From: Hyphochytrium catenoides
Taxonomy: Eukaryota; Protista; Hyphochytriomycota
DNA: 61,013 nucleotides
Assembly: GCA_900088475.1 (NCBI GenBank)
Contig: FLMG01000982.1
Location: 1-61,013 of the forward strand
Direction of reading: 5' to 3'
The position numbers and the translations under genes are program-made. Below are positions 22,736-38,553 of this stretch, in pieces; within the stretch, counting starts at the first letter, position 1; every line of letters starts with the position of its first letter. The notes beneath the pieces were generated by a model. The model was not told the origin of the DNA, did not search any database, and saw only the letters and a list, made by a program, of their open reading frames with translations.

Positions 22736-24435
22736 CTATTGCCCTAGTGCCGCAGACTTTGCTTGGTCAATCTCCTTCTTGTCTTTGCTTCTCCTGTGCT
22801 GTCGGTTTGGCCGCGAGCTCCTCGTGGAAGTCAACGACTGACTATAAAACGGACTGGACTGGTGGACCTTGAAGCCATAGACTCTAGGGATATACATTTG
22901 GGTAGATCTGGTTGGAATCAGATCTGGATAGGTCATCAGGAAAATGTGTGGGAAAGAGGTCCCAAAGTAAGCCCCATCAATATCTGAAAGGACGCGAGAG
23001 TGAAGGAGGGCTACGCGCATGGGTTGACCCCTATTGTCTTTCCAAGGAGAAAGAACGATAGACAAGCCACGCAGATGATAACGCGCAAGTAGAAAAAATA
23101 TGGGAGGCAGCACATATCGTGAGAAGAAGCCTCTAGAAAGATATTGTCTTTTCCAAGGAGAAAGAACGATAGACAAGCCACGCAGATGAAATCGCACATG
23201 TAAAAAAAGTATGGAGGCAGCACATATCATGAGAAGAAGCCTCTAGGCTATTTAGAAAAAATGGTGGAAAGGATACTGCCTTGTCGACTGGACTTGGGAA
23301 AGTAAATGTCATGGCATTTGGGACAAAAGACATTGACAGTGGTGTTCCTAGGAATATCAGACTGGCCAACGGGTAGGACTGGCTGTCCTTGACAATAAAC
23401 TCGAAGACAGCGACCAAAGTCTACTCTACTATACTTCTGGAGCTGAAAAAGAAAGCAAACAAAGGTCAGAGCCACCACGTGCTGACAACCGGCAAAACTG
23501 TGTGGGATTCCCTCGTCAGTCGAGTAGCAGTATTTAGAGCTACAAAAAAGCGAATCGACATTGAAGCAGACTGGCTGCTCAATAAAGAAAGGAAACTGCG
23601 AAGGAGCACCCTATCAGCGGCATGCTCGCACCACCGAGGAAGAAGACTTAGCCACAACGACTGACTCAAGGACACTTACCATTGCTTGCATCCCTCTGCT
23701 TGTGAGGACGTACCGCGCATGAATAAGTCCGTATAGCATCTCAGCCGCGGATTCTACCATTTCTTGCTGCTGATCACTCAAGTTCTCTGCTCAGAGAGCG
23801 CAGGTCAAAAGTCCGCGTCGTTTCCTTACTCAACCTCTACCCATCTCTAATCTGATTCTAATCATATTTGGTCGTTAGACTAAACAGTCCGTAACTCCTT
23901 CCCTCATCTCTCATCTGGCCCCATCACTCTATTGCAATGACTTCTACGTCTCTGCTGACGCCTCACTCACCATACGGAGACTCCAGATCAAGGATCATGT
24001 CCATTGCGTAATCATAGTACGGGACCATACTGCTTAAACCGGTGAGATTGAAGTCGTCTTGAATAAAGTCCTCCTCCACCTCGCAGAAAAACTCATTTCC
24101 CCTAAGAGAGCAGAACCATTGGATCCACGAAGTTTCCTCGGAACCGCTTTCTCCGCTGCTGAGGAGGTACCGTCGTTCAGTCTAGGTGAAGAACGACGAA
24201 AAAGAACGATAGAAATGGAGCAAAAGAAGGAGACATAAATTAGAAGAGGAGAGAATTACCTTTCTGCCTCTTCGTCATCTTCCTCTTCTTCCTCCTCCTC
24301 CTCTTCTTCATCATCATCATCCTCTCCTTCTTCCTCCAGCTGACCGTCGTCCGGAGTTCGGTCTTTGGCCACACCATCAGGGAGGCTTGCTGCCTCTCCA
24401 TCTTTTCTCGCATCGTCATCTCCGCCAGCCTGCAT
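22736..24435 (-). CDS. CSNK2B: Casein kinase II regulatory beta subunit with acidic N-terminal extension; 5 exons
   Basis: [101 protein letters not shown]. Start at MQAGGDDD (24435) is tentative. Confidence 0.95.
22984..23276 (-). other. Probable U12-type GT-AG intron (last intron of CK2 beta)
   Basis: Donor GTATCCTTT is the U12 consensus. TCCTTCAC (branch-site-like, one mismatch to TCCTTAAC) lies at 23007-23000, about 17 nt before the AG. Splicing restores G-N-I-D-G-A-Y. Confidence 0.7.
23032..23247. repeat. Tandem duplication of a ~110-bp unit (2 copies) inside the CK2 beta last intron
   Basis: TATTGTCTT(T)TCCAAGGAGAAAGAACGATAGACAAGCCACGCAGATGA...GGAGGCAGCACATATC.TGAGAAGAAGCCTCTAG occurs at ~23032-23136 and ~23142-23247. 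Confidence 0.92.
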
Positions 24436-32967: not shown

Positions 32968-35900
32968 CTAGTGTAGCAGAGCTCGCATCCTGATTTCAAC
33001 CAAATCTGCTTCTGCCCTGTAAAGGATGAGGCCGCAAGTAGAAACGTTGCTCTCCAAGAAGAGAAGCAGTTCTTCTTCCGGGCCTTCCTTCTCACTCACC
33101 ATAGAAGACCACTTATGCATCAACTCCGGTGAACAAAGCGAAAGGAGTAGGCGAAGTGATGGAGAGAGTGTTGACAGATCGATATCGCTTCCATCTGTTC
33201 CAGGTCTATCCAGAGAGAAAGGCTGAGCTAGCTCTTCCTTCCTCACCACGGATCTAACAAACAGAGCCGGGTCGTTGACAGAATGGAGTTGGACCTTTAG
33301 CTCATATATCTCCTTGTCTTCCCTTCCTTTGCCACCTCGCCTTCTGCCTGATGGCAAGAAAGGGAGTACGCGGACCTTTGCATTGACCAACACTGGTATG
33401 CTTTGGCGGATATGAAGCTTCTCACACAGAGGAGAGATGTGCCTGCATGCAAGCGCAGAATGGTTTTGAGAGACGAGTTGCTAAGCAGTGCCTAGGGTTA
33501 GGGTTAGGGTTAGGTGAACAAAAAGTTGATATCTAGGACCAGCTTGCTGGCTATTTAGAAAAGGCAATAACCTTAGGCAAAGGCTTTAGCTGAGCCGTGG
33601 ACTGAGTTCAACGAAAAGAGTCAAGCGCTAGGGTTGAATAGTTTTGGGCGTGCAAAGTAGAGTCTTACTTGACAGCGTAGATCGGATGCTCAATTGCCGA
33701 AGGACTGTAGAAGACCTGCCTAAACTCCTTCACACTAGATGGTAGCTGAAGCAGTGTCCGTTCTGCAGCACGAAGGCCTGCCATTGCGCAGCAGTGAACA
33801 TCACATCAGACTTCAGTTTATGACCACAAATAGAGTCGACAAGACAGTAAGACCAAGCTAAGCAGGAGGGGAAAGGACATAGGGTGTAAGAGGTATACAG
33901 AAGCAGAAAGAGCTGAGTGACCAGGACGGCAACTGCCAAGAGACAGCAAGAAATCTCAAACGACATTCAGAGAAAAAAGGGGCGATTCTAAGCCTAGGCT
34001 TGGCTCTTGACAAAGCCATGTAGACCTAAGGTTGAGTCTATATAAGGGCAGCAGATTGGTTTACCCCGGAGCCTGTGGCCACCTTCCATCTTCTCTATCA
34101 GAAGTCCCGGGAGACCCCTTTTCGTTTGCTCTCCCCACCACGCCAGACAGTCTGACACCTGAGGCAAGAGAGAAAACGCAGTTGGCCTTAATGAAAGTCA
34201 TAGAAGCCCGGATGCATAGCTCCCAGTGGTATGAAACAGACGAACGAAGGTAGGATGCGGTAGGTAGTTGTCCCTAAACAGCTCCTTGTGCGGCATCCTC
34301 TGCAGTCTTACCTCTTTAATCCCACCTAGCTTGGCAAGGGTGGGAGGGATGAGATAGCGAGAGAATCTTGAGGTTCTAAGCATCAATGTGGGCTGCTGCT
34401 GCTTATACTCGTCAAGATCAGGGTGCGATACCACAAGGCACGTGAGGCCAAGAAGATCACCGGGTTGAACTCTGATATAAGAAGAGAGATGAATGTAAGA
34501 GACAAAGGCAAGTGTTGTAACACCAGCTCTCTGATCCTTCCTGCCTTGATCCTCGGATGATACTGCCCCTCATCTACCCTTGGATCTGTTGTCTGGCTCT
34601 TTACTGCCTCTGTCTCTCTTCTCCATGCACTAACAAGCTCTTATGCTTTGGGGCTTAATTTTGAGCTTTGCCCGCACGGGTCCCTCTACCTTTCAAAAGC
34701 TTCAGGCTGTGAGTTGCTGTACGCCTTCACTACCAGGGACCAATCGGAGGTGTGGTCTGTCATACTGATCCAACGGAATTCGTAGAACTGGCCACGGAGG
34801 AAATCGCAATCAGCTCCGGGGCTGCATAGACGACAAACAGCCGGCCAAGTCGACATAGAGTATCAGCTATTGCGGAAGGTTAACTACAGGATTAGCAAGA
34901 ACTGGTGAATCGGCAATCAAGCAAGGTGTCAAGGATTGCAGGTTCGGCGGGATTGCAACGGTTCAACAATAAGGTAAAATCTCTAAGTGACAATCGAGAA
35001 AATGTCAAGGCCGTGAGACCAAGAGAAGGACGATAGCCCCTGACAACCCTCAGAATCCACTGTCTTACTGATATTTGCTTCTCACCTTTCCTCAATCTTA
35101 TGATATTCTCTTTCCACTCTGGAGACGAAGGTGACGACTCCAACTAGACTAGCCATGCTCATCTTCGGACCAGGGTCCTGTCGTAGCTTTGCTAGCGACT
35201 TGAACCTATAGTCCAGTAAGTTCACGACCCTTTCGGACTTGCTTATCTGAGGGAACGATGCTAGAAGGATGAGGAGAGTAAGCCCAAAGGGGCGGTGGTA
35301 GAAGGATGAGCAAAGTAGATATAAGTGGGCTCTTAGACTTGAGGACAGAGTGAACACAGAAAGGTCAGTGGTCCCTCACCTTTTTTAGCAAGATGTAGTG
35401 AAGACAATTGCTCTTCTCTCTCCTCGCCCGTTGGCATGAAGTGCTCGTCAGGTATATACTCCATTGGGTTTTCTATCAACAAGATTGAATTAGACTAGAC
35501 ACGAGCCCAGCAAAAGGCAAGCTCAGCCTTTGTCGTGAGAAGTAGAAAAAAGGCTCATGGCTATATCGACAGAAGGATCACCATTCACTCTCCAAGGACA
35601 GACTTAGATACCCGTGAAGCTCACCTTCCACTCTGTATATGGTTCCTACCGGGTTCGAAGGGTTGACAGAAAGCTCGATGTTGCCAAGGTAGGTGAAGGA
35701 GAGAGGGTTAAGGAGGAACGAACGATCAAAATGAAGCAGTCTCGCCATGAAGAAGCAATTATCGAGAGACAAGGAGACCTAACGCACTCAGCAGACCTGG
35801 ACGGGTATCCGTCTGTTGAACGGCCAGGGAACTAGACCTCCCAAAGGGGAAAGATACAGAGATTAAAGGATTGAGAAGGATATCTTTTAACCACATATCC

Positions 35901-38553
35901 GACTACAGCCACAAGCTGTCCTTCTTCGACAGTGTGATAGAACTTTGGGACCGCAGTTGACCAGACGAAGACAGAGACGGACCGTGACTTATCGGCTGCA
36001 TGAGCGGAAGAAGGAGGGGGATCAGAAGTACATCTTCAACTATAATATATTGATAACGGACATTTGAAGCAAGTTGAGATCACATTATAAGAACCCAGTG
36101 AGACTTGAGCCACGCGGAACGCGAGGTATACAACTGAGAAGGACGAAGAGTCCGGAATCGGCTTTAGTTCCGACGTACCGATCTCAAAGGTAAAATTTAC
36201 TGGGAAAACACCTTTGGTGTTGGGTTTCCCATAATGGTTGAGTCTACTCTTCCACTTTACTCGGCCCATTATGGGAAGATGCTTCTGTTTATTTCCAAGA
36301 GCTTGCTGGATTGTGTAAATCTCCCCATCAGGACAAAGGGAGCGCACTGCTTTTTCCACCTCTGTGGCCGGAAGCAAGTTGACCGCCTCCCAGACAAGAG
36401 TGCTAGACCTGACGACACGGAAGAAGACCCAGGAAGAGAGCAACATGGAGGTGTATGAGCAACGCTAAAACTATCAACAGATTGGGCAATAGTGGTGTAC
36501 AAGAGAATTTGTGGCTTCCAACAGGAAAAATAGGGAATAGGGAAGCAAGAGGTAGACTGTGACATGGAAGGTCAAGGGTATGGATCGTGCCCGATCCGTA
36601 GGGCAGCTCTAAGAGAGAGATGGCAATGACATGTACTACGAGCAAAGGAATCGTACTCTTTCTGCTCTTCGGTCCTGTCACTCTCGAAAGGAACCGCTTC
36701 CGGTTGCTTGACTAGTGCGTCTGAATTGTATAGAGGGAGATAGTATAGCCGCTTGCCAAGGAGAGGGCGATCTCTCTCCATCACTTCTCTAAGCTCCGGG
36801 ATGTAAGCTATTGTCGACTGTATTTTGTGCAGGGCGGGGGATGATAGTATTGGAAAGTGAGTATGAGTTAGCCGTTGTTGTTGAGAAAGACGTCACCAAA
36901 ACCCTGCACCTGTTCCGCAGCTGGGCTCTCTCTTAGGACTGTCAGCTCCAGGATGACTCTGAAAGTCTGGGGACATTCCGATAACTCGTCCATAAAGGAC
37001 CCGGCCTTGACGACCTACCAAGTGCGAAGACGGTGAAACGTCAGATATCCGCTTCCTAAGTGAAGCCCTTGCTAGCGACCTAGCAGCTTAAAACGGCTCT
37101 AGCGACTTTGATCGCACCTTTATGGTGGCACCGGGGCTTAGGGCGCCATTGTAGACTAGCGGATGAAGACCTGGAGCCAGTAGGCACTTGATCTAGAGCG
37201 AGACGGGTATCAGAGTGTGAAGCATAGCGGTAAAAGCTGAGGACCTAAAGGGAGGAAGCAGACAAGACCCAAGATTTATAACAGTGCCGAAAAGGTACAA
37301 CTTTCCAAGGGTATCAGGTTATGCAGAGGGGAAGGAGAGAGTGTGAAGAGCAGGAAGAAGCGCTCTCTTATTGCTGCATCGTATCGATTTCTTACCTTGC
37401 ACTGACCATCGGTGAGGACGATGTCAAAACCGTCCCAAGGGGAAGGGACTTGGTCGCTCGTAAGACCCAGGGTACTAATTACCTCTTGATAGCTCTCATC
37501 AGGAAGGACTAGTTGAGAAAGAGGGAGCGCAACAAAGTTTATGATCAGGATGCTAGGGTCCTCAGCACCGTGCTTTTCCATATCCCTTCGTCCAACCTCG
37601 CCTTACGTCAGGGCTCTCTTGCATATGACTGTCCCTTTCTGCTTCTTCTTCTTTTTGTACTCTTTCCCTCTCACCGCAGTGGTATGTCCCTCTCGGAAAG
37701 ATACTTTGCTCTCTTCTGCTTACATCTATGTACATTCACCACCCTAAGAACCATAGACAGCTTTGAGGCGATCCCCTTTTCTGTCAATAGCAGCTTAATG
37801 GCATCTTCCGTCAAATGAACTTGTGCTTCTCCCTCTTCCTTGGCTTCTTTTTGTAGCGCTTTCGCACCTGGAAAGCAGAAGATAAGCCTCGAGACCACCT
37901 GACTTGTAAACCAAGCTCGCTTACCGCGTTTTCTTGACGCTTTTGCATCTCTAGCAGCCGCTTGAGAGAGCGACAAAGGGAGAGGAACGGGCAGTAAAGA
38001 ACGAGCAGCTCTTCCCCTCTGTAGCGCTGCGGCTGCCACACTCTCGAGAGTCTCCTGTGAGCCAGGAACGGGTAGCGTAGGAGCTGGTACATTTCGAGCT
38101 TCTGAAAGCTCAGCCTCCTTTGTATTGCGCTGATGCACCGCTGCGTCCTTTCCTTCCTTCTCCGCCACGTAGTCTGCCGCAGGGGTTTTTCCTTCTTCAA
38201 TAAGACGCCGTCTCCGATCAAGCCTTTCAGTTCTTGATATTTTGCTGCTTGGGGACGGAGAGTGCCTCTTCTTGCCGATCCCTTTTGCTGCTCGTTTGAC
38301 ATTTCTAGTGGATAGGTTGCTCTCTTTGCCCAATTCGTTTTCGAAATCCACGACGTGGTGCCTGACTCTAGTGCTTCTCCGCAATGGAACCTCCTCATTC
38401 TTGTCCGCGGAATTGCGTTTTCCTTTTGCTTTGCCGATTCCTCCATCACGGACGGACCCTGCGCCTCTGATTGTTCCTGCCTTTCTCTTTCCTTCTTCCT
38501 TTGTCGTTCCCGTATCTGCAGAGGTCGCATTTAGCTTACGAAGGGGAATGCAC
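32968..38553 (-). CDS. RADX: RADX-like (RPA-related, CXorf57/DUF5521-type) multi-OB-fold ssDNA-binding protein; multi-exon, true start further upstream
   Basis: Collinear RADX-type blocks: FDIVLTDGQCKIKCLLAPGLHPLVY; RPLLGKRLYYLPLYNSD; RVKWKSRLNHYGKP...EIADKSRSVSVFVWS...FYHTV...GYVVKSY...IELSVNPSNP; VGVVTFVSRVER; FRWISMTDHTSD...AYSNSQPEAF. Confidence 0.75.
33493..33514 (+). repeat. Short interstitial telomere-like (TTAGGG)n tract in an intron
   Basis: TAGGGTTAGGGTTAGGGTTAGG. Confidence 0.75.
35693..35883 (-). other. U12-type AT-AC intron (191 nt) in the RADX-like gene
   Basis: Donor ATATCCTT (35883-35876). Perfect branch site TCCTTAAC (35714-35707). Acceptor TTCAC ending at 35693, with no AG between branch site and exon. 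Removal gives in-frame GYVVKSYLGNIELSVNP. Confidence 0.88.

Follow-up and report, generated by a model that had tools for sequence, protein, structure and literature searches.

The RADX-like gene examined here, from the hyphochytrid Hyphochytrium catenoides, is interrupted on the minus strand by a 191-nt intron (35883..35693) that starts with AT and ends with AC. We consider this to be a genuine minor-spliceosome (U12-type) intron of the AT-AC subtype with a probability of about 0.9, its excision being predicted from the DNA. The coordinates were read from the window, that is, the whole stretch of 61,013 nucleotides that was analysed, and agree to the base with the position and description given by an earlier sequence-only reading of the same DNA. 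That reading attributed the intron to the minor spliceosome, an assignment supported both by the presence of every sequence feature of this intron class and by four minor snRNA genes in the genome. The intron, its signals and the surrounding parts of the gene are as follows.

32968-38553, minus strand: host gene, RADX-like, collinear with OB2 and OB3 of human RADX and with the DNA-contact residues kept
35996..36178, minus strand: ordinary upstream GT-AG intron of 183 nt, GTACGT..C/T-rich tract..TGCAG, with Pfam RADX positions 229-267 on its upstream side and 265-306 on its downstream side
35884..35995, minus strand: upstream exon of 112 nt, (A)DKSRSVSVFVWSTAVPKFYHTVEEGQLVAVVGYVVK(S), spanning b3-helix-b4 in the second OB fold (human RADX 263-309; Pfam RADX 265-306; OB-fold family PF01336)
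35693..35883, minus strand: probable U12-type AT-AC intron of 191 nt, phase 2 (Ser codon split AG/C); only with this excision are both the frame and OB-fold strands b4-b5 intact
35876..35883, minus strand: 5' splice site ATATCCTT, 8/8 consensus positions, followed by CTCAAT
35707..35714, minus strand: branch-point sequence TCCTTAAC, matching GUAAGGA of the genome's own U12 by complementarity with one A bulged
35693..35695, minus strand: 3' splice site CAC, 15 nt past the branch A and preceded by a C/T-rich run
35625..35692, minus strand: downstream exon of 68 nt, (S)YLGNIELSVNPSNPVGTIYRVE, OB-fold strand b5, ending at a GTGAGC donor
35475..35624, minus strand: ordinary downstream GT-AG intron of 150 nt, GTGAGC..TTGATAG, the frame running on into ENPMEYIPDEHF..
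34689..34793, minus strand: later exon, third OB fold of RADX (human RADX 396-430; Pfam RADX 396-430, 21.7 bits)

A U12-type AT-AC intron is defined here by a donor of the form /RTATCCTT, a branch sequence TCCTTRAC located some 10-20 nt ahead of the 3' splice site, for which no long pyrimidine tract is needed, and a terminal AC that matches the AT start. All of these sequence features are present. The donor junction on the minus strand reads ..GGATATGTGGTTAAAAG/ATATCCTTCTC.., with 35883 as the first intron base (in codons ..GGA TAT GTG GTT AAA AG/ATATCCTTCTCAAT..; junction bases AAAAG/ATATCCTT), and the acceptor junction reads ..CTCTCCTTCAC/CTACCTTGGC.., with 35693 as the last intron base (in codons ..GTTCCTCCTTAACCCTCTCTCCTTCAC/C TAC CTT GGC AAC ATC GAG..). 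Within the branch motif the second A, at 35708, is 15 nt away from the last base of the terminal ..TTCAC/. The sequence-only reading had described the next coding block as lacking an AG acceptor in front of it, and indeed the last 48 nt of the intron (35740 to 35693) contain no AG dinucleotide. The AGs nearest to the acceptor are those of GCGAG at 35742-35741 and of CATCGAG at 35675-35674, the latter within the next exon. If unspliced, the frame hits a TAG at 35834-35832, again as had been proposed. Excision is predicted to give ..VVGYVVK S YLGNIELSVNPSNPVGTIYRVE, an unbroken OB-fold strand pair (..VVGYVVK-S-YLGNIELSVNP..). The earlier idea that splicing restores the SY motif carries less weight than it may seem to: ..VVK-S-Y.. 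does result from the excision, but read-through also places a Y there (RY), coincidentally.

A script enumerated every GT-AG, GC-AG and AT-AC excision in this region that leaves the frame open from the one exon into the other. There are 34 of them, and the canonical OB-fold pattern ..QLVAVVGYVVKSYLGNIELSVNPSNPVGTIYRVE is produced by 35883..35693 alone. The explanation that survives best beside the minor-spliceosome reading, while still being very improbable, is that the major spliceosome uses GT-AG sites here and that the U12 motifs are coincidental. GT-AG pairs that keep the frame do exist (for example donors 35894, 35891 and 35837 with acceptors 35779, 35741 or 35674), and about 0.1 pairs of U12 motifs are expected per window by chance. 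However, the donors of such pairs are weak (GTGGTT, GTTAAA, GTCGGA, GTCTAG) and their acceptors lack a pyrimidine tract (GCGTTAG, GGCGAG, CATCGAG), quite unlike the GTACGT and GTGAGC donors and the pyrimidine-tract-AG acceptors of both neighbouring introns. Their products would lose or gain 5-43 residues, so that either residues of strand b4 or b5 are deleted or 18-43 intron-like residues are inserted. Slightly less probable still is that the stretch is retained, the gene being a pseudogene or the protein being truncated at this point. The failure to find either a close homologue or a second copy in the genome is compatible with this, whereas the flanking exons are open and match RADX collinearly across 200 or more profile positions, the DNA-contact residues are conserved and the splice signals are intact. 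Equally remote is a real intron with a misplaced 3' end or next exon (another AC or another downstream exon), since the further AT-AC combinations that hold the frame (for example with acceptors 35739, 35707 or 35689) use non-consensus donors or yield non-OB sequence, and the canonical branch distance is found at 35693 only.

Judged by its homology, the host gene is predicted to encode a divergent RADX-like single-strand-DNA-binding protein, in agreement with the sequence-only reading: two collinear matches to human RADX and three collinear matches to the Pfam RADX profile were obtained. The searches were made exon by exon, and the RADX match reaches the AT-AC junction from the upstream side only. 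With PF17659 the exons gave 11.3, 16.9 and 21.7 bits at the collinear positions 229-267, 265-306 and 396-430. The exons were scored separately. Each is singly below the family cut-off of 33.4 bits, and the sum of about 50 bits, a rough one, lies above it. The contiguity of the profile across the first two of these segments also backs the junction of the upstream GT-AG intron. The third segment, the later exon at 34793-34689, was found by an RADX profile search of the whole genome. Human RADX (PDB 8u5y), an RPA70-like regulator of RAD51, aligns with the upstream exon over its residues 263-309, the alignment reaching the junction and including counterparts of W279, K304 and S306-Y307. In the human protein W279 and K304 contact DNA, and roles have been described for W279, K304 and Y307 (10.1101/2023.09.19.558089). 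The interrupted Ser codon corresponds to S306 of human RADX, which places the intron between b4 and b5, two strands of OB2. In PDB searches, 8u5y_B was the best match for the later (OB3) exon (E 6.8e-4) and the second for the upstream (OB2) exon (E 0.045), just behind archaeal RPA; in the searches with these two exons RADX, not RPA70, came out as the nearest relative of solved structure. In contrast to this collinearity of OB2 (263-309) and OB3 (396-430) and to the shared W279/K304/Y307 equivalents, the Hyphochytrium protein is otherwise very divergent from human RADX, and its N- and C-terminal parts had no match in Pfam when searched exon by exon. The 22 residues of the downstream exon matched nothing in Pfam or PDB, as expected at that length. 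No homologue across the junction came from a word search with a 142-aa piece, one exon searched against 1.8 billion representatives returned one spurious repeat protein and no homologue, and the genome contains neither a paralogue nor a second haplotype of the locus.

How often such motifs arise by chance was assessed with 300 dinucleotide-preserving shuffles of the window. A shuffled window contained on average 0.11 full sets (RTATCCTT donor, TCCTTRAC and a 3' YAC/YAG within 1500 nt), and at least one set was present in 31 of the 300 shuffles. RTATCCTT itself is found 10 times in the window on both strands, compared to 3.4 expected from the shuffles, and when donors were checked for pairing with a branch, only the site at 35883 had a full partner at an intron-like distance. 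Apart from this site and one at 23276, the RTATCCTT sites of the window are without a convincing branch motif and 3' site. Across the genome, donor and branch pairs in the length class of this intron numbered 9 versus 7 in a reversed control. The motifs alone are therefore weak evidence and not proof. It is the exact fit to a reading-frame break within a conserved domain that makes chance negligible. Genome-wide, ATATCCTT occurs 2489 times versus 1595 times in the reversed control, an excess that is mostly unrelated to introns, and for the exact extended donor RTATCCTTTCAAC there is no enrichment (5 matches versus 3 in the control).

The sequence-only reading had proposed searching for the minor snRNAs, and Rfam models of U11, U12, U4atac and U6atac each gave one match in the genome (61.0 Mb, 4759 contigs), U4atac scoring below its cut-off. 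The U12 match (55.9 bits; Rfam cut-off 53) carries the branch-site-binding sequence AUGAGUAAGGAAA, the U11 match (47.5 bits; cut-off 39) starts with AUAAAGGG, and U6atac scored 69.5 bits (cut-off 33). The U4atac candidate reached 47 bits (cut-off 53; E 1.6e-5). Its 5' end, UCCGUCCUUGUC..AGGGAG, is predicted to pair with CUCCCU..GACAAGGACGGGA of U6atac over 12+6 bp (dG -33 kcal/mol), and the pairing includes a compensatory two-sided change relative to the Rfam consensus. Because of this predicted duplex, two-sided change included, we take the U4atac candidate as genuine despite its score. Neither of the results for minor-spliceosome proteins is decisive: the zf-U11-48K domain is present twice in the genome and was not treated as specific, this zinc finger occurring in other proteins too, and searching the genome exon by exon did not reveal PDCD7/59K.

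In animal U6atac the sequence AAGGA pairs with the donor. The sole U6atac gene of Hyphochytrium (contig C1895, 24516-24643, minus strand) carries GCCGA in place of the AAGGA of animals and most plants, and it reads GAGCCGAGAGA where the consensus is GAAAGGAGAGA. A U6atac without the donor-pairing AAGGA counts against the U12-type reading of the intron, but the change is a known one. Davila Lopez et al. 2008 (PMC2396436) reported this 'CC variant' from oomycetes, Acanthamoeba, Physarum and cnidarians and judged it hard to reconcile with donor pairing. We rejected the idea of a defective copy, given that the gene is the only one in the genome and matches the published variant (PMC2396436). The CC variant fits an oomycete-related lineage.

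With these RNAs, splicing of the intron could proceed as follows. U11 snRNA would bind the ATATCCTT donor through its 5' end, and U12 snRNA (GUAAGGA) would pair with TCCTTAAC, leaving the branch adenosine bulged. The U4atac/U6atac.U5 tri-snRNP would join next. Cleavage between AAAAG/ and /CTACC would rebuild the Ser codon and bring together strands b4 and b5 of OB2, the predicted exon ends being ..GTTAAAAG + CTACCTTGG...

We also searched the genome for other introns of this type with the pattern RTATCCTT..TCCTTRAC at gaps of 40-225 nt, G-type donors being left out in the 133-163 class. In all, 53 non-redundant donor-branch pairs were obtained genome-wide, and their excess was greatest where gaps were short (19 pairs versus 5 in the control at 40-70 nt). 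Pairs were kept if they had a 3' site 10-16 nt past the branch A, a tail rich in pyrimidines and an open frame on either side, and 19 strict U12-type candidates of 75-211 nt passed. The intron at 35883..35693 is counted among them and, with its 191 nt, lies at the long end of this range. Since the coupled pairs number 53 and 19 of them pass the filters, the genome probably holds tens, not hundreds, of U12 introns, as does Saprolegnia; a genome rich in U12 introns was rejected on the same coupled counts of donor and branch. For several of the candidates, two almost identical loci are present on separate contigs (C563/C1640, C1422/C4673 and C29/C561), as would be expected if the haplotypes of a diploid had not been merged in the assembly. 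A further likely case, of the GT-AG subtype, lies within the window.

22984-23276, minus strand: likely GT-AG U12-type intron in a casein kinase 2 beta gene, with donor GTATCCTTTCCA and, about 17 nt upstream of TTTCAG, CTCCTTCAC

The exon upstream of this likely intron ends with ..SSRQG, and its interior consists in part of two tandem copies of a unit of about 120 nt, the interior being that of the intron.

The filtered candidates also offer a weak lead on donor recognition. The 19 candidates (with window positions 35868-35883) show an extended donor RTATCCTT-Y-Y-C-A, in which positions +9 to +12 are Y-Y-C-A, and they have almost no G at +9 to +15. Complementarity to nt 7-12 of U6atac peaks one base off the animal register, at 3.68 of 6 pairs compared to 2.85 in the unfiltered remainder, in a small sample for which eight registers were compared and in which pyrimidine richness by itself favours pairing with a purine-rich RNA. 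The intron at 35883..35693 has CUCAAU at +9 to +14, a 6-bp match to GUUGAG (nt 7-12) of U6atac. It is conceivable, while in our view rather unlikely, that in lineages with the CC variant (GCCGA for AAGGA) the lost donor pairing has been replaced by one between +9 to +14 and U6atac nt 7-12, one base off the animal register. If true, such a substitute pairing would address the puzzle that the CC variant posed to Davila Lopez et al. 2008 (PMC2396436).

Phytophthora and Saprolegnia are known to have minor introns and the corresponding snRNAs, both of which ochrophytes lack (PMC2846911, PMC10639083). The U12-type AT-AC introns of these oomycetes resemble the present one in the donor and branch consensus, in being few per genome and in the accompanying U6atac CC variant (PMC2846911, PMC2396436, PMC10639083); the present intron differs from them in coming from a Hyphochytrium genome and in residing in a RADX-like gene. 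Our literature search found no paper linking Hyphochytrium with U12 introns. A U12-type intron is an expected and ordinary find for an oomycete-related lineage. It adds one more case for a hyphochytrid that probably has a working minor spliceosome, like its oomycete sisters, whereas diatoms and other ochrophytes have lost it. In practical terms, the gene would be broken by gene finders that allow only GT-AG introns. The more unusual part of the finding is the RADX-like identity of the host gene in a stramenopile.
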